Below, piece after piece: positions 4,001-18,854 of a stretch of DNA of 64,000 nt. Source of the stretch: Tubulanus polymorphus (taxonomy: Eukaryota > Animalia > Nemertea); assembly GCF_964204645.1 (NCBI RefSeq), contig NC_134035.1:12556451-12620450 (forward strand), written 5' to 3'. The notes beneath the pieces were generated by a model that saw only the letters and a list, made by a program, of their open reading frames with translations, did not search any database and had not been told where the DNA came from. Both the position numbers and the translations under genes were made by a program. How positions within the stretch are numbered: position 1 is the first letter of the stretch; the number at the start of each line of letters is the position of its first letter.

Positions 4001-6985
4001 ACTTGTGTTTAATAACATTGTCATCGATGGGGAATTACTGTAATCTCGCTAAGAACCAGGACAGAACCAGGACAGATTTAGCTGTGACATTTATTGATTT
4101 GATTTGAATCTAATTGATATTGTATATACATTTGAATGCTCAGCCCGGCAAGTAAGACGAAAAGTAGGCTTAAATGAAATCTAATTTCTTATTCGTTGAT
4201 TGGACCGAAACAGGCTCAGTCTCGGTAATCACCACCTAAATGGCCTAAGAATCTTATTGAATGAGCAACGTAGCAAACCTCGCCAAACACGGAGAGCGTG
4301 GAACCGAGTTGAGCGAAGTCTGAGTTAAGATGGTCTAATCGATCAGTCTTACATCTAAGCAACTCGATTCAGTTGCACAATAAAATTCGACCCTAAAGCA
4401 TTGAATATGAACTGATCTAACTCTGGTTAACTCTAATTCACAACTGTGGAACTGGGTTCTGAGTTCAGAGTTAACTATTACAGCTGTGGAACTGAATCCT
4501 GAGTTCAGAGTTAACTCTAACTCATAAACGTGGGACCGGATTCTGGAGATTTAAGATCCAGAATATAAAGGATTGAGAAATTCGTAATCTGAAAATTATC
4601 ACCGAGAAGTTCCTGTTCTACGTAAGCATCAGAATAACTGACTAAGTATATCGTTGTCTTCCTGTGGTTGTGAGTACGTCTAGGTCGTCGTTTATGTATG
4701 GATGCACTAACGTGGTCAATCTACGTGTTAGATGTCCACAGTTCGGGATAGTCACCGAGGCAATTTACCGGTAATCCCCACAGGACGGATAAAACCGAAC
4801 ACTTCCTTCCTGCTGCAACGGATTCTAGCGACAAATTAGAAATGCGACGAGCGACGGTGAAAGTTTTCTCTTTGCCGTATCGTATCTGAAGCCAGAGGCT
4901 GCGCGCATCTGTAGACAGTTCGTTCGCTAATCCCGTCACGATAATGAATTCTAAAGATCGCATCGGAAAAAAGACGCCTGGAAAGCTATGACTGTTGTAC
5001 GCTCAGCTATCTCACTCCCGGAAAGCTGTGACCGCTGTACGCTCAGGTATCTCTCTCCCGGAAAGCTATGACTGCTGTACGTTCAGCTATCTCACTCCCG
5101 GAAAGCTATGACTGCTGTACGTTCAGCTATCTCACTCCTGGAAAGCTATGACCGCTGTTCGTTCAGCTATCTCACTCCTGGAAAGCTATGACCGCTGTTC
5201 GTTCAGCTATCTCACTCCTGGAAAGCTATGACCGCTGTACGCTCAGCTATCTCACTCCTGGAAAGCTATGACTGCTGTACGCTCAGCCCCCCTCTCTCCC
5301 TCGGTCCCTAACGATGCTGTTCGTTCCCTACGCTCGTTAAAAATGTCCATAAACCGCTAAATCTTTGAACGGATTTGTCGCGTAGGAATCAATTATTTCT
5401 CAGCGTCAGAAAAGGATACCTGATAACTACCTACCGTAATCTATACGATGGGATTGAGAATAGCCCTGACACTCTGACAAATCAATCAATTTATTCAATT
5501 AAATTCTTCATTGCTCCGTTACGTAGCTCTAAATACATCGTTAGATGATACAATCGACAAAAAGAGCGGTGAACTGAAAGCTTTTTTTAAAGAATGATCA
5601 TAGAGACAATGATCAATGATCATGATAACAATAACGATTGAATATGTACACACATTGAGGTTATGGTATTTCAGTTCGGTAGTTTCCTATACAAACAGAC
5701 ATAATGCCAGTACGATTCTTTCGAACTCGATGTTTAACGGTTTAACTGTTTAAATATCTATATATTTCTACTGTTATTTTCAGCGCCGATGATACTTTCA
5801 GCGGATTTTTGAACACCTATGCAGTCATCCAGTCTTCCGGCGACGTACTGTGGATGTTTCCGGCCGTCGTGAAAATCTACTGCAGCCTCGACGTGCGCCA
5901 TTTTCCGTTCGACCAGCAACACTGCGATATCGTGTTCATATCGTGGACGTACAACGGGTTCCAGTTGGATATCTACTACAATAAAAGCTACAAAAACACG
6001 GTGTACTACACGTCGGAAAACCAGGAGTGGTACGTCAACAAGATCACCGAGGATCGACACGAGAAGAAATACGCGTGTTGCGACGAACCGTACCCCGATG
6101 TTACGTTCACCATACACATGAGTCGACGATCTTTGTTTTACGTGTTCAATCTCATATTCCCGTGTATGTTGATCTACGTCGTGTCGATGTTGGGTTTCTT
6201 TCTGCCGATCGAGTCCGGCGAAAAAGTGAACCTCGAGATCACGATTCTGTTGGCGTTGGTCGTGTTTTTGATGATAATCGGCGAAACGTTGCCGCCGACC
6301 CCTGACGCTATTCCATTACTAGGTAGATACAAAAAAAAACGTTTTCCCTTTCTGGACGCCGTCATGCTGTTATCGCACTTAATTTGTGGAAAAGGCTCAT
6401 TGCGTTAGATACAGCGTTTGATGATTTTGTTTTCTATTTTCAGGTATGTTGTTCGGCACGACGATGTTGATGGTTTCGGTCGCATTGATAATGGGCGTTA
6501 TCGTTACGAACATACATTTAAGGCGTTATTCCGATCAAGAAGTCCCGGCGTTCGTGCGTAGAATATTCCTGCGATGTAAATGCCATCGCAAATCGAAAGT
6601 AAAAGTGCGCACTAGCATGCCGAACAGGGACACAATAGAACTGGACGCGCTGGCGTCTAACGGCACGGAGACCGAGGCGTTAGCCCCGAATACACCGCGT
6701 AGTCGCATGAACGGCACTCTGAAGCGGGATGTGACCGGTCATAGGTTAGCGTACGCGTCGCGGGAGGGCAGTATCACGGACATTGATCAAGAGGTCGTCC
6801 TACCGCTGAGGTCGAGTATCGCCACGCATTGTAAATGTCACGGACCGGAAGGTTGGACGGCCTGCGCTAAGTTCCTCGATCGGTTGTTTTTCTGGATGTT
6901 TTTCACGGCCAGTGTGCTGGCGTTCTTTTTCATTTTCTACCAGGTACCCATACACGTTTTCAGAGACCCGAAACCGCCGTCTTGA
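1083..6985 (+). CDS. Nicotinic acetylcholine receptor alpha-type subunit (alpha9/alpha10-like Cys-loop receptor), 3' part; 5' exons lie upstream of the window
   Basis: Exons 1083-1192 (110 bp, RWVDEYLHWNPAQFGNVTSIHIPAYDIWIPDLVISN), 5784-6322 and 6444-6985 have GT-AG boundaries and compatible phases. Cys-loop CSLDVRHFPFDQQHC, loop B SWTY, vicinal cysteines YACCDEPY, M1, M2 (ESGEKVNLEITILLALVVF), M3 and M4 (LDRLFFWMF) are all present. Confidence 0.95.
2096..3858. mobile_element. Foldback / non-autonomous DNA transposon with ~575-bp near-perfect inverted arms, in an nAChR intron
   Basis: 2096-2670 is the reverse complement of 3285-3858 with only a few mismatches (aataaaccattttacagttgctagcc... 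/ ...ggctagcaactgtaaaatggtttatt). The spacer is ~610 bp with no long ORF. Confidence 0.9.
4978..5287. repeat. Minisatellite, 40-bp unit, ~7.7 copies
   Basis: The unit ggaaagctatgactgctgtacgctcagctatctcactcc(c/t) is repeated head to tail with no spacers. Confidence 0.95.
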
Positions 6986-9360
6986 AACTATTGAACAGGC
7001 GTGAAATCCTGTGAATGAATTGATAAATTACCTGGCACGCTATGTCGGGTATATAGCTTTACGTCGTCAGTAAAGTAGCGGACAGATTTTGGACACGAGT
7101 CGAGAACTGTATTGAACGTACGTACAACGCGTTTATGAACGCTGAGCCAAGCCGTGTATCTTTATAACAATCTCCTTAAGATCTGAACTTTTAATCGCCA
7201 GTTTTTTTCGGAGACATTTTTATCGTTATACGTACATTCTAAAAATGAATTCGCCGATTGAGCGAACCAATCTATATCGTTTAAATCATTCGCTAAACCT
7301 CGCAAACAAACGCGACTTTGTTTGTAGTCTTTTTTTTCTATAACGATCAAGCAATAATAAGATATAAGATCTATATACTGTAAAAACAACGATATCCATA
7401 CAATCACAGTTAGAACGTGAATTGATTTAACAATTCTTTTAGATTCCTTCGTGAAATACACGTTCCATTCATTCATTAACTAGATACTATCTACATGATT
7501 TAAGCCGAATGTCTGGTACGTACAGATTGATGAGCCCGCTTTATTAAGGGATCGATGCCCAACCTGGGTTCAGGTCTGGATCCCCTCGATTGGGTTGTGT
7601 ATCATTTGTGTATATACGATTTTTATTAGCAATTTTAAAAAAAAGCTGGTAAAATTGTAGAGTCACAGAAAAGAGATGTTTTAAAATATGTTTGTTTTTT
7701 GGATTTCGGAGTGTTTTAGTAACATCAGGCGGTCAATGTTTGGCTATTTCAATGTTCAAGGGACGTACTCCGAATATCCATCGCCAAAACCAAAAATCCG
7801 CAGTCTTTATGAGCCTTTGCCTAAACACATAGCAAGAATTAATGGACTAGACCACTAGCAGACACGACCCCGTTGCAAAGTCAAGTCAACTCCGACCACA
7901 GAATATTCTTAAATGTAAAGATTGGTCTAAGTTTTTCAAATGGCAATAGAATCAAGATTGGTCTTAAAACTATACATTAGCGACGGCGCCCGGGTGCTAT
8001 TATCAATACTGTAGCATGTAGCCGACAAATGTCATCGTCTGAAATGAGGGTTTGAAAATTGTCTATTGCGGAAATTCTTCATGTCGATTCAGAGCTTAGT
8101 GTTTACATTGTCATTATGAATTGGTCCCACTTTCTGTAGTGTATACTTTGTGTTCTGTGTCGTGCGACCAAAGCGACATCTATGATAAAATATACATATA
8201 TGTAAATGAGGTCGATATACTAGATACATCCTCCCTCGACAGGGAATCCAACCTGATGACACTGACTTGGCCACGGAACGAAAACCTGCCTGTCTAACCA
8301 TCAGGTTCGAATCCCTGCCGAGGAAGGATGATGCATGTTCATTGATAAAGTTACTGATGTACAAATTTACTGTGTAAATATTGCGGCGAATTTCGATAAA
8401 TAAAATTATATGTATAGTGTTAAAATCTACTTCGTTCTAATTTCGTTTAATCAGTGGACGAAACCTGTTCGCAATAAAAGTGGCCTCAGTCGGAACACCT
8501 TATTAGTCAATGAAATTAAGAATCTACATGGTGGTCATCAACAGAGAGACTGGTCATTGAAAATGGTTGTATTTTGCTGGTGCTATTGTCACGTGCATCA
8601 CAGACTATCGTACTAGCATCGCTCCGACAGCAGACAGTTGGTAATCGATGTATCAAATTTAGAAAATCAATTAATAAAATCAGGATTTACTGCGCTGAGT
8701 TGAAATTCAATTATCTATTTGTATACTGAAAATATTTCACGAATACAAGATTCGGTTCGCCAGTGATTTCGTCATGTACGATTATATCAAAATTTGAAAA
8801 TCGCGTACGAAACGGCTCTTTTGAAGAAATTTGCGTTCGAGAATCTAATAAATAGGAAAAATAATGCGGACACCTAGAAACATGGCACTTAAGGGAACTG
8901 TGAAAAGGCTGATTATCATACGATTCTAAATACATCGCCAGTACATAGAAATAAAGTACATGTATTTATTACATTAGTACTCAGACGGCTGTGTATGAGT
9001 ATACGACACAATTATATTGATTATACTGGTCATTAATTGTAAACACAATGACCGCGTGTGTGTGGCGACCGGTGATGTGTGTCGTACTGCCAGCGAGCCC
9101 GGACAGTACTCACACACAAAACATGCCACCACAAAAACACCATTTACAGTACTAGTCACCCATACATTAAACTTGACAACGTGAAAGTGTCCATTTTCGC
9201 ACCGGAATAACAGGGATTTTAAAATATCCGAATCAAAGATGGAATAATCTTTTATTTATACGGAGTCGTTTCGTTTTCGGATATTATACGGCGTTTGTTT
9301 GGAACGTGTTGATCTCGTGCGGACGAAATTAATCAGAAATCAACATCGGCGACGACAAAA

Positions 9361-12300
9361 ATGATGATTACCGCGAGGAAAACTATTAGTTCACGTCTTA
9401 TCCTGTTCGCGTTTCTTGTACTGATAAGTTATTTATCGCTCTTCCAGCAGTATGATTTCAAGTTTCTTCGCAAACTCAAGGTATCGTTAAACAGATGTTT
9501 AGACACTTAGATCTTTAGACTTGTCTTAAGTTGTTGAGATTGGTTGTAGAGCTCAGACTGGTCTCAAGTTAATACATTGGTTATAGAACTAAGATGGTCT
9601 TATAGCCTATGTTTGTTTGTTGTTTGTTTTTGCCTGATGTCGTTCTAATCTAGGATTCCCCCTATTTGACTGTTCTTGGTCATTTTATCTTAGAATAGGA
9701 GTCTTCCTTCTTGTTATTTATTTGATGGTAGATTTGATCTCATGCATTTTGATTTGATGTCCCTTGCAAACCACACCTGGCAGGCACGATAAGTAAAATG
9801 TTTGATTTGAAATCGGAAATCGAAGTACAGATGGTCGTGTCATCGGCATTCTATAAGCCACAGCTGTGACTGACCCGTGGATCTAGTTCCACCGTGAGTT
9901 GGTGTTGTTGAAATCAGTTCATATTCAACGAGTCAAATTCAGAACACTGTGGAACTGGGTCCTGTTGTCTATTCCTCGTGACATTACCCAACACGGAGAT
10001 GACTAATCAAAACTTAGCCTAAATGTCTCAGTATTTTATTTTACAGGCCTCATATATGTCTCAAACTCCACGTGAATTGAAGCCCTGTCCATCACATTTT
10101 TCGCATTTAGGTAAGGCTATCGAGAAGATTACTTCGCTAATCAGAGGAAAAAAAAGAATAGAGATAATGAATTGATCACTATTTCTTTTCTTCCATATTT
10201 ATATATAGCCGAACTGGGTGAAATAAATCTATCGAAAAATCTGATAGACGCGCCGTCGATCGCTGATATCGAGAAGAACACAAACGGTCTGGACCCGGAC
10301 GGTCACGGCAGACCCAAACACTGCATCTCTAGACACAAAGTAGCCATTATTGTTCCGTATAACGCCGAGGACGACCTTCAACTGAGAACGTTCCTCGCTT
10401 ACATGCACCCGTTTTTACAATCGCAACCGATCGATTACAGGATATTCGTTATTGAACAGGTATGTATTTATTAACATAATTTACGGAACAGTCAGTGATA
10501 CATTGTTTAATGATTGATAAATCACGCGCTAGTGTGACGGTAGCGAGTCGATACTGTTAATATACTAGCACATCTTCGCCGAGGATCTATACTAGTCGCA
10601 TGCCACAGTTGGAATGTCGATCTGCGTGAAATCCTGACCGTCAAGTGCTGCCTCTAACGATTACGTTGGCGGTAAATTTGTGAACTAGCTTCTTACTCGC
10701 CTGCCACAGTAACGCTGTTGCACGGTTGAATTAGTTCAGAATTTCACCGCTAACGTCATCTTGTGAGGCAGCACTTGACAGTGGAGATTATTTTAACAAC
10801 ACTGATGGCGGGCCGAATAAGACTTGAAAACAATTCTCGACACTTGGGGAACTACAAAATTTACCTGACTACCTTTTTGAAATAAAATTGAAATAAAGAT
10901 GCGAATTTTCAATCATATTCCGCCAAGTGTGATAATAGAAATGAATGTACGACTGTAGAAAATTGATAAAAATTTCATCGATAATGAAATGCTATTTTGC
11001 ACTAGTTCCAGTCATAGAAATCGCTCATAGAATCGATTCAAACTTAACTACTCCAATTAGTTTTTCCATCATAAAGATTTCTTGAACTTTATTCCACGTT
11101 CATTTCATTTGTCTACGATTTACAGATGAAAGGAGCAGTCGTCAACAGGGGAATGATGATGAATATGGGATTCATAGAAGCGGATAAAACTCTACCCGGT
11201 TTCGAGTGTTACATATTCCACGATATAAATCTGCTGCCGCTAGATGGCAGAATCGAGTACGCCTGTTTCGACAAACCGCGTTACATGTCGTCAGTAGTTC
11301 ACGATGCCAATGGACGGTAAGATGAAGTAATTGTTTTTAACGCATATGAAGGAATGCGATCGATTCTAAAATGTGTTATTTCTTATTTTTAGAGTGTATT
11401 TTGATATGGAACACGGTGTAATTGCAATCAGAGCCGAGCAATTCCATGAACTCAACGGTTTTCCGACTGTTTACACTGATTCGTTGGACGAGGATTCAGA
11501 TATGCGCCTCAGGTAGGCTCGAGTCCCTGCGCAATTGGGATAAGACCTTGCACCAATTGTGCTGCTGAATTTCCTACCACCCCCTCCCCCACAACCACCA
11601 CCAACCCTTACGTGAAATTGCCTCCCTCTACCAGCTTTCATAGCTAAACGTGGCAGCAAAACATATATCAACATCTAAATGAACATTTCGTTTCTTTCCA
11701 AATCTATGGTGGAATTTTCTGCATCTTTATTCTTGTTTAGCTCGTCCCATTGAAGATCGTTGTTCGTTTCTTTATATTTTCAGGGCGGCTAAATTTGGAA
11801 GTCGTTTCGAGCGGCCGGGGCAAGATTTCTCCCGATACAGATTGATCGGTGAACGAACCGAACCCGTGGATGATCGGAGTCCAGAAAGGTATAAAAGCTG
11901 ATACCAGTATTCTAGCTACGCGTATAAGTGTAATATGAGGTCCCGGGAGCTATGTTCCGGATGACCTAGGGGATTTAAACCTCTCAGTGAGCCGATAGTT
12001 CCACTAAAATAACTGATCGAGAACAACAAATTACTTGCCTGGACAATGCTTTATTCGCAAAGAGAACGAACGTTTACACTCATAGACAGATTCCTGATTC
12101 GGGCCCACTTACCAGGGGAGACTCATCACAAAAATCTAAAATTGTCTATTTTCAAAGGGTATAAATAACGAAACCATGTATAACTCCAGCAGAGAAAACC
12201 CTGGAACGACGCTAGCCAAATCCAAACTTACTTCCTTGATTCCTATATGTCCCTTTTAGATACGTTTAAAATTTTCAAAAAATTCTGACTATTCTTTTGA

Positions 12301-15300
12301 AAAGATTCATAAGATTGTTTATACGATGTGTGCCTCTTATAACATATTTACAGATATGAACTGCTTCATACAGCGACCGGAAGACTGGAGACTGATGGTA
12401 TTTTCGGTATACTGTACACAGTCGTCTCTAACCAATCTCTACAAACATTTACAAGAATCAAAGTGATAACTTCATGTACCGATGAACCTCCTAAATCAAG
12501 TATGTGCGCTATTATTTTAAATTTCAAATGATCATTTCGTCAATATGCATCGAGGTATCAATGATCGAAAACCTACAATATTAACGATATAGCTGTTATT
12601 GTTTTTGCCTTATTTCGTCTGGAATCCTTCAGGTCGTCTTCAGAGTTTTTTTTGGATAATAGATAAAAGGATTCCACCCGAAACGTAAGGAAAAAACAAT
12701 GGGGTGGCTCCACTAAGGATATATACCTGCATACGTCGCAAAAAAAAACAAAACCCGATTGAAATAGCGGTGTGAAATATCTAAAGACGTGAAGGAATTG
12801 GGTGGGTGGTTTAGATTAAGAGTCTATGAGAAACGACTAACATGGGCTAGTTGATGAAAAGTTGATTTACGTTTATTTGAACCAACTGTTGAGTAACAGT
12901 TAAATAACTGCTCAGCCTTGGTTCTCAGCTAATAGAGCATCGGCCTGTGTCTGCCTTCGTCAATATTCAAGTAATCATCCATTTAACTCATAAATGTTTT
13001 GTCTTCTTGACAGCTGAAAAATTCTATATCCCTCTGAAGCCGCCGTCGTGGACTGAAGTGGTCAATGGTGTTAATGGTCTGGATGCAGATGGATATGGAC
13101 GGGCGAAATATTGTACAGTTAAACACAGAGTAGCGATTGTAGTGCCGTATAGAAACAGAGAAAAACAACTGAGAACTTTCCTCGCTCATATTCATCCGTT
13201 TCTACAGAAACAACCTATCGAATATCGAATATTTATCGTTGAACAGGTAGGTGAATAGCTCGAGCAGTTTTATCATTTATCTACCAGCAGCGAATAAGCT
13301 GTAAATTCAGATTTTAAGGGTTGAAATCCTGCCTGGAAGGTGTAGTTTGAGTCGTGTGTTTAAGCTGTATAACCACTGAACTAGCAAGTAACCTAATCGT
13401 TGGTGGTAAGCTTTTTTAATCGGATGGGCTTATACCGAGAATGTGGTTTGTGAAAATATCCGATCGTGATACTAGTGATTAGGATTAGTTCATGGTCTAC
13501 TGGTTAGCACGCTTGCTTTGTATGTACAGCATCCAGGTTCGAACCCGTTTTTACTCGGAAGTTACGATATTTGTTTTTTCTTTTTCAAGAACAAAGGAAA
13601 CAGTTTCAATCGAGGAATGCTGATGAATATCGGATTTGCTGAAGCGAGTAAATCGTACGATTTTACGTGTTTCATATTTCACGATGTCGACCTGTTGCCT
13701 ATTGATAGTAGAAATCTGTATATATGTAACAGTGACCCGACTCATGTGTCTGTCGCAATCAACATCTTTAACTACACGTATGTATAAATATCAAGTCCTA
13801 TATTAACAACTGTTACAGACAGTGTCTCACTACTGCCTAGAGCTCCAGAAGACCCCTTCCAATCCAGACTAACCGGCCTAAAGTTCCAAGACTCCGTCAA
13901 ACCCTACACTACTACCTACAAGTTCCGCAGTTATACTAGCAACTTCCACAAAAAAGGTTTCTTCTACCACTCCAAGACTTCTCCCAAACCCTCGACTGCC
14001 CCTACAGCTCCAAGACTTCTCCCAAACCCTCGACTGCCCCTACAGCTCCAAGACTTCTCCCAAACCCTCGACTGCCCCTACAGCTCCAAGACTTCTCCCA
14101 AACCCTCGACTGCCCCTACAGCTCCAAGACTTCTCCCAAACCGTCGACTGCCCCTACAGCTCCAAGACTTCTCCCAAACCCTCGACTACTCCTACAGCTC
14201 AAAGACCAAAACCTTAGACTCCTACAATTTCCGGAATGTCGAATGATGATGCTTTCATATGTATATAATGTGGTTTTCCATTGATAATCTAGATTACCGT
14301 TTGCTGAGATTTACGGGGGCGTGAATTCCTTCAAAAAGGAACATTTTGAGCAAGTGAATGGATTTTCAAACAAATACTGGGGCTGGGGAGGTGAAGATGA
14401 CGATCTAAGATACAGGTACTAAATGATAACGAATTTCTATGTTTCGAGTAGAAGCGTTGATAACCATTGAATATTCATATCTGACGATGGTTCGACGCTT
14501 TCTATCTGTATCTACATTCATCTCTCGTTCATGATATTTTCACACAGAGTATTACGTAATGGTTTCAAGTTGAGAAGACCCCCCGCGGAGATAGCCCGGT
14601 ACGACATGATAAAACATAAGAACAACCCCGACGTCAACCAGCGCAGGTCAGTATAACGTCCATTGTCGATGAATTGTGACGTTCGTCCAAGTTATTTACA
14701 AATCACAATGAACTAATAGAACATGGTCTTTTTTTATCATAACTTTACCGACTACGATTTTTCAAACATTTTTACATTTTTTTACTGAGGATAAATTCTA
14801 GAAATATGATGCATCCGTAAATTTATCAGTGAAATTATAGTACGAAAGATCAATACTATCATTTTTATTGTTTATTTGATTATTCATCATTGAATTTATG
14901 GTGTATTTATTCTTTTATTTGTATATTGTAGGCACGAATTGTTGTATTCGGGAAACCTTCGAGAACGAACTGATGGACTCAACACACTCAAATATACAAT
15001 CACAAACCGCGAAAACCTTGAACTATTCACCTTGATCAAAGTAGAAATACACGAAGACATTCAGAAGAATAAAACCAAAAATGCACCGAATGTTACTCAG
15101 AAAGCTAAGAAAAATGTTACTCAGAAAGCTAAAGTGGAAGTAACGGAACTTGCTACCGAACCCAAAGCCGATGAGGTGTCTGTAAAAGATGAAAAGCAGA
15201 AAACCACCAAAGCGGTTAAAACAAACGAGTTAAAAAATGTTATTAACAAGAAAATGGCAGAACATGTAAAAAACGTTAAACCGACAGGAGAAATAATAGA

Positions 15301-16597
15301 AAATACCCGGGATAATAAGAAAATGGTAAGCGCGATAACTGATAGGAATGAGACACCAAAACGTAGGAAAAACATTGAAGTGAAAAGTAAGACGCCTCTA
15401 AAATCTACGAAAGTAACAAAACATGTTAAACACAAGAAGATGGATGATACGGCTGAAATAAAGAAAGAGGTTGTAAGAGATAGTAAAGAAATGCAGAAAG
15501 TTGCTGTACAAGATGCAACTGATAGTATAGACAAGAAAACTGATACTACGACAAAATCCAACGATAGAATAGAAACGACAAAATATGGAAACCAAGTTAA
15601 AAAAATCGTTATTGAAAACGGCGGACCGTTGAAAATTCTTACGGACAAGACATCAACATCTAGAACGAGAATTGATGCGAAAAAGGAGGTTTCTACTGAA
15701 ACTGTAGGTTCTATAGAAACCGAGTTGAATAAACAGATGTCTAAACATAACGAGATTGGGAAAAAGGAAGCTTCGATAAACATAGAAAATGCGAAAACAA
15801 CTGAAGTTACTGGGAAAATTGAGAAAGCTAGGAATAATATACCTTCGAAATACGTAGAAAACAGAAATACGAAAAAAGTCGAGTTGAAGAAAGAGGTTAC
15901 TGATGATAAAGAGAATGTCGACGCAAAGAAACATAGAAAGCAAGTTAATCTACAGGGAAATGTATCTGAAAACAAAATGGATGAGAGAAAACAGCCATCG
16001 GAAAAATTGGAAAAACCTGCGCTTGAGAATAGAATGCAAACTGGTTCTGTTAACAAAGGAGCAGGCAATGAGACGAAGGGAAATCAGCCTGCGAAAACCA
16101 TAGGTAAAGAGCCAGCTAAGGATAGAATGGTTTTAAACAAAGAGTCTCCTGAAAATGGAAAGATCGAAAAAACGAAACCTACGAAACGCACAATAAACAC
16201 TAAGTCTAAAATTCCAGATGAAAATGTTATTGTAAATAAGAAGGCGGTTAAGAAAGAAGAGGGAAAGGATACACGGGAAAAGATGGTAAGGAATCGAACA
16301 GATTCGAAGAATGTCAAAGAAGAGAAACCTTCAAAAACTGCAGAAACCGTGAGGCCTAAAAACACAAGTGAAAATAAAATGAAGGAAACGGCTAAAAAGC
16401 TGAGAAATGAAAAACAAGAGCCTTCAAAAGATGTGAACGAATCGACTCCTAAGAATACGAAGGAAGTCGAAGTGAAGAAAGTTGTGGAGGACGCGTCGAA
16501 AAATAAAACTGACGCAAATCGTGAAAATGCAAAGATCGTTGAAAGAGTTACAAAAACGAAAAATACTGCAGACGAAAATGTGGAAAAGAAACACTGA
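9361..16597 (+). CDS. Tandem-domain GT7 glycosyltransferase (beta-1,4-N-acetylgalactosaminyltransferase, bre-4-like): TM anchor, degenerate GT7, intact GT7, long charged tail; ~1101 aa
   Basis: Exons 9361-9480, 10047-10110, 10209-10459, 11126-11316, 11393-11512, 11784-11888, 12354-12499, 13014-13246, 13590-13777, 14293-14415, 14548-14646 and 14932-16597 are all GT-AG and phase-compatible, totalling 3306 nt. Exon 1 encodes the signal-anchor LILFAFLVLISYLSLF. Domain 2 has VPYRNR, FNRG, FHDVD, WGWGGEDDD, MIKH and DGLNTL. Confidence 0.88.
10630..10788. mobile_element. Small hairpin/MITE-like inverted repeat in a GT7 intron
   Basis: gtcaagtgctgcctc...gttggcggtaaattt pairs imperfectly with aatttcaccgctaac...gaggcagcacttgac. 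Confidence 0.6.
13970..14206. repeat. Minisatellite, 38-bp unit, ~6 copies (intronic)
   Basis: The unit ctccaagacttctcccaaaccctcgactgcccctacag is repeated in tandem. Confidence 0.95.
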
Positions 16598-18854
16598 AAG
16601 ATAAAAATGACGTTGAAATTAAGAAGACAGTCGGAAAGTAAGCAACATTCGATGAACACGGACAAATTAACACGGAAAGGTTTAGAAGATATTTTAGCGA
16701 TGAATGACACTTTTAAAAGTGAAGGGGGTTGACCGAAAACAGTAAATGGTGCTTGTAATTTCGATCGAAGATATTGTCGTATATTTTTACACGAATTTCG
16801 TGATTTGAACTCATTTTAAATGAATTATCGCCGCATATTGGTGGCAGTTTTAATCGATGTTTTATGCTATGTACAATAATTGTCTAAATCATTTCATACA
16901 ATGTATGACGAATATACATTCTAATATTTCATATTAAGTTGTTGCGTTTTTCTCACGATACATTCTTGTTATGGTCGGGTTTGACCTTTGTTTTTGTTTT
17001 ATGAGGTAATGCGTGTCGTTCGCGTGGAATTAACTGATCATCGTGTTTTACGGGTGTCGGGTAGGAGGAGTGTATGTCGGGTCATTAGTGTCCGATCGCA
17101 TCTATGCGATGGTCAACTCACAATTAATACCGCTGTTCTTATCCGCGAGTGTAACGATAAACAACCGACATCGGTAGCGTTACTACCGAGCAGCACGCAA
17201 CGAGTCATGTCGCGAGTCCCATATGAACAAGAAAATAACACACTAATGCCGACTATCATCCAAGGCCAGGAATGTATCTGAGAGGTAGTTTTGGGGGTCT
17301 TATTGTCAAGAGAGAGATCCATAAAATCCCGGACAGGCCCATAAAATACCCCTCCCCCTGCTTCGCTCCCGACAGGTGCGGTGGGTCTGTAAGGGACACT
17401 CAATCAAAGAGAAAGTCAAACGAAACTACCAACCAAACAAATAACAGGGTTAATCCCTATTTCAAGATCAAAACCTGAACTCGGAGATTGTGCCTTTCGG
17501 GTGGATTTCTTCATATATATCTAACTCCTGATGGATGAAGCTGCGTGTGGACTTCTTGCTCTATCCGAGCAATACCCTTCCTTTTCTTTCAGATCCCCGA
17601 CATACAAATTTCTCTTGCTCCGCCTCTGAAAGGGTTTATTCTAGGTCAGCTAGCGGTCGGTCAACTACCCGAACGTATGTGACAACGAGTTAAATATTCA
17701 TATGAATTTTTACAAAAAAAAACGTCAGGAATTAACTTGAGGTCTTGCATTGGCGTCACTGCAACTAACGATTAAGAAGTGAAATCACGTACAGACATGA
17801 TTAGAACAGTAAAATTGCGCGCACTCACAGGGGATTGAACCCGTCGCCAATGGTGTAGAACTAGTTCACTTGACGTTTGACTTAACTGATGTACCAGTCT
17901 GCGCTAGACACCCTTGACCAAAGGTCACCGACTGGGCATGATGAATAGATGTTTCAATAACTAAAAACTCACTATTAACATATAAAAAGATTGAAAACCA
18001 AATTCATTTTCATTGCAGAACAAAAATTTGAATCTGAAAAAATGACGTTTTGGACTTTTGGTATATATATATATATATATACGTTCGAACATTATCTTCA
18101 CGACTCTTACACAAGAATTCCTCTTACGTTATTCTCATTGTGATTTTTCTGCACACGGAGCTCGTTAATGATTAAATGTCGTCGCAGGCTACATTATTCC
18201 CGTAACTAGAAGAGGGAACTGTCACTTGACGAGCTTTTCAAACATGTATGGCGCTATTTACAGGACGCCGACAACGAAACCTAAATAATTCATTTCTCGT
18301 TTATTTTGCTGTTGTCTTCATGTCGTATTTTTATTCGCTCGATTCCGCCACGGGATCAGAGGCCGATATTCTGCGTATGTTGTTAATTGCCACCTACAAG
18401 TTTTATCCGAGGTTTTACGAATAGAGGCACCACCACTCACTAGCAATCCCGATCGCTGATTGGTCTTCGGGCTTCTTATCTGTCGGATTTCACGTACGGA
18501 TTCGTCAGAATTTAGAAAGCAAAGAAACAAGGACCAGAGAAGGAAAGGAAGACCAGGTTAGTTTCATCATGAACTCGTTTTAGAGTCCATGGTTTCATCA
18601 ATGTATTCGTTCATTGTTTATGCAATTTAATATAGTTTCCGACGAGTTTTTCTAAATGTTTTTGAATAGGAATTAGGTCGGTATGGAGTAGTTTAAGTAT
18701 CGTTTACTGGTCTCTCGTCAATCTGATCGAATACAGTTAATTCTGAAGGTTTTTTAAAATATTTTTTTGAACGGGAATCGGATCAGCGATCACGAAATCA
18801 TGGATCATGGAATGGTTTTAACTATCGGTCACTGAGATCGGTCACGATGAGATA

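Follow-up and report, generated by a model that had tools for sequence, protein, structure and literature searches.

Can a glycosyltransferase gene of the B4GALT type hold, next to its working catalytic domain, a second copy of that domain that has lost its catalytic residues and is still kept? This question is raised by a locus in the palaeonemertean Tubulanus polymorphus. It lies in a window (the whole stretch of DNA that was analysed) of 64,000 nucleotides, positions 12,556,451 to 12,620,450 of contig NC_134035.1. The gene is found on the + strand at G000:C11 ~12,565,811-12,573,047; coordinates below are window positions unless a contig is named. Two sets of GT7 exons follow each other in a single reading frame, of which domain 1 (D1) has lost the main catalytic motifs and domain 2 (D2) has retained them. 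The reading preferred here, to which a probability of about 0.55 is given, is that of one gene encoding a type II protein in which D1 is a dead but kept structural partner of the live D2.

Two GT7 domain sets in one frame

The gene model was obtained by reading positions 9000-15400 and translating all frames. It consists of 12 exons (E1-E12) between 9361 and 16597 (+), all introns are GT-AG, and the exons form a single unbroken frame of 1101 codons that encodes, in order, a signal-anchor, a stem, D1 (E3-E7), D2 (E8-E12) and a tail of 511 amino acids. The exon coordinates, splice sites, phases and in-frame join of 12499 to 13014 given in the original prediction, which was made from the DNA letters, were all reproduced. 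Its end at 15070 was misplaced: no stop is present there, and the frame continues to a stop codon at 16595-16597, adding the 511 amino acids of the tail. E1 (9361-9480, +) contains the start codon, a short cytoplasmic tail and the sole transmembrane signal-anchor (amino acids 1-40), and ends with a GT donor in phase 0. Hydropathy analysis places the only transmembrane segment at amino acids 7-31 (maximum 19-residue hydropathy of 2.05) and none elsewhere in the 1101 amino acids, in agreement with the earlier statement that a second anchor is missing. The single N-terminal signal-anchor that defines type II Golgi glycosyltransferases is thus predicted for this protein. The stem exon E2 (10047-10110, +) carries the D1 equivalent of Cys134, followed by seven codons and a phase-1 donor.

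The second domain is described first, because residue numbers are those of bovine B4GALT1 and were derived from the D2 columns by a constant offset of +142, set by alignment to B4GALT1 chains. Pfam scans and homology searches were run exon by exon, with gathering cut-offs of 27 bits for Glyco_transf_7N (PF13733) and 23 bits for Glyco_transf_7C (PF02709). E8 (13014-13246, +) encodes the N-terminal part of D2 with an intact PYRNR motif and scores 70.9 bits for Glyco_transf_7N, and E9 (13590-13777, +), with an intact DVD motif, scores 67.0 bits for the same family. E10 (14293-14415, +) has an intact WGWGGEDDD motif and an Ile at the Tyr289 position, and scores 64.6 bits for Glyco_transf_7C, so that all three matches are above the gathering score. 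MIKH (Met344, His347) is intact in E11 (14548-14646, +), and E12 (14932-16597, +), with an open frame of 567 codons, encodes the end of D2 followed by the tail, which is rich in Lys, Glu, Thr and Asn, and the stop. The D2 exons match B4GALT1 crystal structures with E values of 4.6e-18 (E9) and 6.6e-12. From Cys176 to His347, D2 aligns without gaps to bovine and human B4GALT1 and every motif that was checked is there: R189/R191, D252-x-D254, the W314 lid, E317-D318 and M344/H347. Family conservation was assessed on 48 GT7 domains anchored on D2, in which 60 columns reach a conservation of at least 85%; 58 of these are kept in D2 and 43 in D1. The claim that the second domain is intact therefore stands, and by its residues D2 looks like a fully competent GT7 domain. 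It would act as a normal inverting, Mn-dependent transferase of the B4GALT/BRE-4 type. The Ile at the Tyr289 position suggests, from this position alone, the invertebrate beta4-GalNAc-transferase type.

D1 is encoded by five exons on the + strand. E3 (10209-10459) holds the N-terminal GT7 part and has PYNAE in place of PYRNR, E4 (11126-11316) has DIN in place of DVD and retains the second Cys pair, E5 (11393-11512) has TDSLDEDSD in place of WGWGGEDDD, and E6 (11784-11888) has LIGE in place of MIKH, at the Met344/His347 positions. E7 (12354-12499) completes D1 and adds a short linker with a Cys, seven codons and a phase-1 donor, as at the 3' end of E2. These four motif changes are all present in the DNA as they had been predicted. 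Aligned locally, the two domains share 43% identity over 249 amino acids with five gap positions (E value 2e-73), and no stops or frameshifts occur. Two Glyco_transf_7N hits had been expected in the whole gene for Pfam, together with two for Glyco_transf_7C. The former was found twice in each domain, in D1 with 71.1 bits (E3) and 40.4 bits (E4), and the latter exceeds its cut-off only in D2, as E5 scores 18.7 bits against the required 23 in a scan whose exon-wise design lowers scores.

The losses in D1 are R189N, R191E, F226V, V253I, D254N, H272Y, G291H, G313D, W314S, G315L, D319S, M344L and H347E. The UDP-binding Arg pair, Phe226, Asp254, Trp314, Gly313/315 and Gly291 are among the replaced positions and are 95-100% invariant in the aligned family. 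In B4GALT1, the high-affinity Mn site is formed by Asp254, His347 and Met344 (PMC7565966), and Trp314 is the lid residue required for donor and acceptor binding (PMC6198961). The features of an active GT7 enzyme, namely the DxD metal ligand, the UDP-binding arginines, the Trp lid and the C-terminal His, are absent from D1. On the other hand, D1 keeps Asp252, Glu317, Asp318, Asp320 and Arg334, its hydrophobic core positions, and three in-domain Cys residues as well as the upstream stem Cys. Its frame is open, 10 of 10 splice dinucleotides are intact and all Cys residues are present, as had been noted before. As judged from its residues, D1 has the pattern of a pseudo-enzyme rather than one of random decay. 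Since the catalytic residues are gone but the fold, disulfides and frame are kept by selection, D1 is here called a pseudo-enzyme domain.

Origin of domain 1 and the selection acting on it

The entry phases of the exons are identical in the two domains (1,0,2,2,2 in D1 and 1,0,2,2,2 in D2), and the four internal introns occupy the same alignment positions. The original prediction took this as a sign of intragenic duplication. Positions and phases are indeed shared; however, the GT7 paralogues on contig C1 are interrupted by introns at these positions as well. As the intron positions are shared family-wide, they fit a duplication and are alone no proof of an intragenic origin. About 10 GT7 loci are present in the genome. 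In the maximum-likelihood tree, D1 and D2 are sisters with moderate support (ultrafast bootstrap 91, Shimodaira-Hasegawa-like approximate likelihood ratio test 74), and the pair falls, together with the C1 cluster, in a clade made up of Tubulanus sequences only (93/80). D1 would then have arisen by duplication within the Tubulanus lineage. Judged from spacing only, E7 probably consists of the former last exon joined to a copied 3' end of E2; by such a step a whole-gene tandem duplicate would turn into an in-frame fusion. D1 would next have lost its UDP-binding arginines, metal ligands and Trp lid, evolving about three times faster than D2.

The C1 cluster itself (G000:C1:12250708-12265562, L001+L002) consists of four tandem GT7 units, A-D. 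Units A, B and D are close relatives of one another (synonymous divergence, dS, of 0.38-0.60), and unit C, which has a stop and deletions, is a pseudogene. Matches of the cluster in tblastn end at the exon with WGWGGEDDD. The RefSeq model of unit D, XP_074646912.1, has 218 amino acids and is without a transmembrane anchor and without the C-terminal third. The copies in this cluster may be truncated or secreted forms.

Multiple observations indicate that D1 is maintained. Between D1 and D2, the Nei-Gojobori proportions of nonsynonymous (pN) and synonymous (pS) differences are 0.37 and 0.79, respectively, with synonymous sites saturated. When neutral substitution of the D2 coding sequence was simulated, 1% of the copies were free of stops at 70% protein identity and 0.25% (0.0025) at 60%, and 0 of 2000 at 55% and at 43% identity. 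The simulation left out indels and the ten splice dinucleotides and is therefore conservative. An internal control is provided by unit C of the C1 cluster: its divergence is far lower than that of D1, and yet it has already been disrupted by a stop and deletions. In addition, polymorphism was read from contigs of a second individual (run X1), which list 40 single nucleotide polymorphisms (SNPs) in 9340-12965, three of them exonic. The SNP density is 0.37% in D1 exons and 1.4% in introns, about 4-fold lower in the exons (Fisher p 0.014). Of the three exonic SNPs, two are synonymous as read from the codons and the third, at 11802 in E6, is nonsynonymous (S>R); all 10 listed indels of this individual are intronic.

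The branch of D1 in the tree is 1.33 long and that of D2 0.40, a 3.3-fold difference. Taken with the signals of constraint, this longer branch indicates that D1 evolves faster yet is still constrained. Long-term purifying selection on D1, which is not decaying, is well supported by this evidence from within one species. The description of D1 as a maintained pseudo-enzyme thereby gained support from a pN far below pS, a neutral stop-free fraction of at most 0.0025 at 60% identity or less, and the lower number of exonic SNPs, and neither pN/pS, simulation nor SNP tests gave the neutral evolution of D1 that had been named as contrary evidence. Constraint of this kind shows, at the level of prediction from DNA, that D1 is translated in some form, without telling which form.

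The D1-D2 junction and competing explanations

D1 and D2 are separated by intron 7 (12500-13013, +; 514 nucleotides). One DNA contig of run X1, from the other individual, covers 12017-13233 and thereby E7, intron 7 and E8, which shows that the adjacency of the two exon sets is real and not an assembly artefact. In intron 7, no ATG-started open reading frame (ORF) longer than 18 amino acids, no hydrophobic or transmembrane segment and neither AATAAA nor ATTAAA was found. Without a start, an anchor and a poly(A) hexamer, this intron could hardly be the starting point of a separate D2 gene. In B4GALT1, the first conserved disulfide links a stem Cys to Cys176. The stem Cys of D1 is encoded in E2. 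D2 has a single candidate partner, a Cys that E7 encodes at its 3' end and that precedes the Cys176 equivalent of D2 by 41 residues (the bovine distance is 42). The 3' ends of E2 and E7 have one layout in common, a Cys, seven codons, one base and GT, and the residues themselves are dissimilar. The earlier claim that both Cys pairs are kept is correct, with the amendment that the 3' end of E7 supplies the partner in the first disulfide of D2. On these grounds it is probable that D1 and D2 are held in a single predicted polypeptide.

Some results weigh against the reading as one gene with a dead partner domain. In the tree, an alternative in which D2 groups with the C1 cluster instead is not rejected (approximately unbiased test, p 0.355), and when clustered SNPs are collapsed the polymorphism test becomes marginal (p 0.058). 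No D1 orthologue was found in other species among the best 150 of 1484 relatives from an exhaustive E3 search, so that the evidence for conservation comes from one genome and one extra individual. The locus was found only in DNA runs (X1-X3), and a possible RNA run, X4, has no sequence from it. Hydrophobic positions of the B4GALT1 dimer interface are changed in D1 (V275S, Y282G). Finally, E2 could be spliced to E8 in a compatible phase and in frame, which would yield a conventional single-domain enzyme with its Cys spacing unchanged.

This last observation leads to the main rival explanation, in which one locus contains alternative domain cassettes. E1-E2 would be spliced either to the D1 exons, with transcripts ending in or after E7, or straight to E8. 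Two single-domain type II proteins with a common anchor would result, without a fusion, and the dead D1 would work in trans, as CHPF or Cosmc do. The phase-1 ends of E2 and E7 match the phase-1 starts of E3 and E8, so that E2 can be joined to E8 in frame with an unchanged Cys-to-Cys spacing, and read-through from E7 would add 10 codons up to a stop at 12529, within 30 nucleotides of the start of intron 7. However, five exons with good splice sites would have to be skipped en bloc, the intron offers neither of the two poly(A) hexamers, and the arrangement of a Cys, seven codons and a phase-1 donor in E7 is useful only if E7 is spliced to E8. Alternative cassettes are therefore regarded as unlikely, if still worth serious consideration.

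It is improbable that D1 is still an enzyme, one with non-canonical chemistry such as a different donor or metal independence. Asp252, Glu317, Asp318 (the catalytic base) and Asp320 are kept and the Glu that replaces His347 could still bind metal, but such an enzyme would have to work with replacements at both UDP-binding arginines, Phe226, Asp254, Trp314, Gly313/315 and Gly291, which are nearly or fully invariant in the family, and with a Glyco_transf_7C score under the cut-off.

Two adjacent, tandem-duplicated genes that were wrongly joined, with D2 having its own start, would agree with the tandem GT7 cluster on C1 and with database tandem models, such as the moth-like P0024 described below, that resemble fused neighbours. 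This is very unlikely here, as the 514-nucleotide gap offers neither an ATG-started ORF longer than 18 amino acids nor a hydrophobic segment, its 12 SNPs in the second individual amount to an intron-like density, and D2 alone would be without an anchor and without the partner for its first disulfide. The explanation that D1 is a decaying relic within a long intron of a single-domain D2 gene, to which the lost motifs and the 3.3-fold longer branch could point, was already disfavoured and is hardly tenable given the absence of stops and frameshifts with 10 of 10 splice dinucleotides intact at 43% identity, a simulated neutral stop-free fraction of at most 0.0025, a pN far under pS, reduced exonic polymorphism and no exonic indels.

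Precedents, significance and surrounding sequence

In the preferred reading, one gene would encode a type II Golgi-type membrane protein with an anchor, a stem, D1, a short linker with a Cys, D2 and a disordered, lysine-rich tail. D1 would be a built-in non-catalytic partner that folds against the live domain and stabilises or positions D2. The closest known enzymes are B4GALT1-6, C. elegans BRE-4 and insect beta4GalNAcT, which have the same type II anchor, stem and GT-A catalytic domain. In the B4GALT family (CAZy GT7, Pfam Glyco_transf_7N and 7C), the solved and characterised enzymes are single-domain, whereas the Tubulanus gene has an extra, stripped GT7 domain between the stem and the live domain and a lysine-rich tail of 511 amino acids after the latter.

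Dead domains that support live ones have been described in chondroitin synthesis. The GT31-like and GT7-like domains of CHPF are without the catalytic motifs, perform no catalysis and stabilise the corresponding domains of CHSY (PMC13389171). The likeness is found in the GT7-like domain of CHPF, which is without the DxD, xED and His motifs and is retained as a stabiliser (PMC13389171). In CHSY-CHPF, however, two different polypeptides carry the dead and the live domains, and each of them has a GT31-like, a cystatin-like and a GT7-like domain (PMC13389171), and the chains are held together by coiled coils and cystatin domains, whereas the Tubulanus GT7 pair would be in cis. Exon-wise Pfam scans gave no GT31 or cystatin part, and the gene does not belong with CHSY/CHPF. 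The heparan sulfate synthases EXT1-EXT2 and EXTL3 are also multi-glycosyltransferase proteins in which one domain per chain is inactive yet kept (summarised in PMC13389171); they differ in having GT47 and GT64 folds and families, with two different domains and no duplicated one. The B4GALT1 homodimer (PDB 6FWU) has a Glu313-Arg330 salt bridge (human numbering) that is conserved across GT7 (PMC6198961). The equivalents of this Glu and Arg (Glu317 and Arg334) are present in both D1 and D2, and the homodimer differs in being a reversible dimer of two identical active chains. The pairing of D1 and D2 would be a cis version of this homodimer, or of the dead CHPF domains that support the live CHSY ones. 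By analogy with these systems, a structural role is the most likely one for D1. A more tentative idea is that an enzyme of the B4GALT type has taken up its dimer partner into its own chain, with D1 as an obligatory scaffold or a glycan-holding module.

The E3 protein search mentioned above accepted E values up to 0.001, and its best 150 relatives were inspected for two matched stretches; no protein encoded by the gene itself was among the matches listed. Among these, three full-length models with two matched stretches were found (P0001, P0003 and P0024); a fourth, P0038, is a 147-amino-acid fragment. P0001, from the copepod Tigriopus (550 amino acids), has two GT7 domains in one predicted protein, and P0003, from the jellyfish Sanderia malayensis (704 amino acids), has two GT7 domains with a single anchor and a Cys-Pro stem remnant that precedes its second domain; both are unverified gene models. 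They differ from the Tubulanus gene in that both of their domains keep DVD and WGWG(G/A)EDDD. The two domains within P0001, and likewise those within P0003, are sister pairs, indicating independent duplications. The original premise that B4GALT/bre-4 proteins are known only as single-domain was therefore overstated, as predicted tandem GT7 proteins are present in a copepod and a jellyfish. A dead N-terminal GT7 domain followed by a live C-terminal one was not found among the two-stretch models in the best 150 of the 1484 relatives, and a literature search on tandem GT7 or pseudo-glycosyltransferase domains gave no description of this architecture.

P0024, a tandem model with a degenerate first domain, was considered as a relative and rejected. 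Its nearest kin are single-domain moth proteins that are neighbours on one contig, and it is probably a fused gene model, unrelated to the Tubulanus gene.

The pseudo-glycosyltransferase domains of CHPF, EXT1/2 and EXTL3 are old, and the route to an inactive partner can no longer be retraced in them. In the Tubulanus gene, a lineage-specific duplication in the best-understood GT-A family has left the live copy adjoining the dead one, with close single-domain paralogues in the same genome. If a dimer partner has indeed been taken up in this way, this would be a single-chain counterpart of CHSY-CHPF, recent enough for its origin to be traced, and, together with the lysine-rich luminal tail of 511 amino acids, it could be an undescribed type of nemertean secretory-pathway glycosyltransferase. 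If the fusion is real, the gene would also offer a simple system for the contribution of a dead glycosyltransferase domain to folding, stability and the holding of the acceptor, and would test whether B4GALT dimerisation matters functionally. If alternative cassettes are present instead, the locus would illustrate the alternative splicing of a whole domain in a glycosyltransferase. The evidence, which is genomic and comes from one species, limits the impact.

The tail (15062-16597, +) is encoded in the same exon and frame as D2 and is composed of 20.5% Lys, 11.4% Glu, 10.6% Thr and 9.4% Asn, with 10 N-glycosylation sequons. It would be located in the lumen, given the type II topology. No Pfam family matched it, and no second copy was found elsewhere in the genome. 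In the two remaining + strand frames of this A-rich region, the ORFs are all short, with at most 71 codons. Antisense ORFs of 315 and 208 amino acids, rich in Phe, Leu and Ser, are located opposite the tail at 15121-16068 and 16084-16710 (-). Most likely, these ORFs mirror the composition of the purine-rich sense strand and do not represent genes. As the other + frames are short and the minus ORFs look like a mirror, the + strand tail frame is taken as coding.

Repeats are present in several introns of the gene. A 38-nucleotide minisatellite with 6.2 copies at 97% identity is found in intron 9 (13970-14206). Intron 1 (9740-9939) and intron 8 (13340-13539) contain very high-copy repeats, with a summed contig depth of 4,287 and 37,191, respectively, against about 45 elsewhere; contigs break at these repeats and run on into unrelated sequence. 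ARAGORN detected no tRNA in the high-copy intronic repeats, which are probably SINE-like (short interspersed nuclear element) in nature. Upstream of the gene and on the same strand, open frames at 5809-6985 (+) form the neighbouring gene and, judged from sequence only, resemble the membrane-spanning part of a Cys-loop ligand-gated ion channel.

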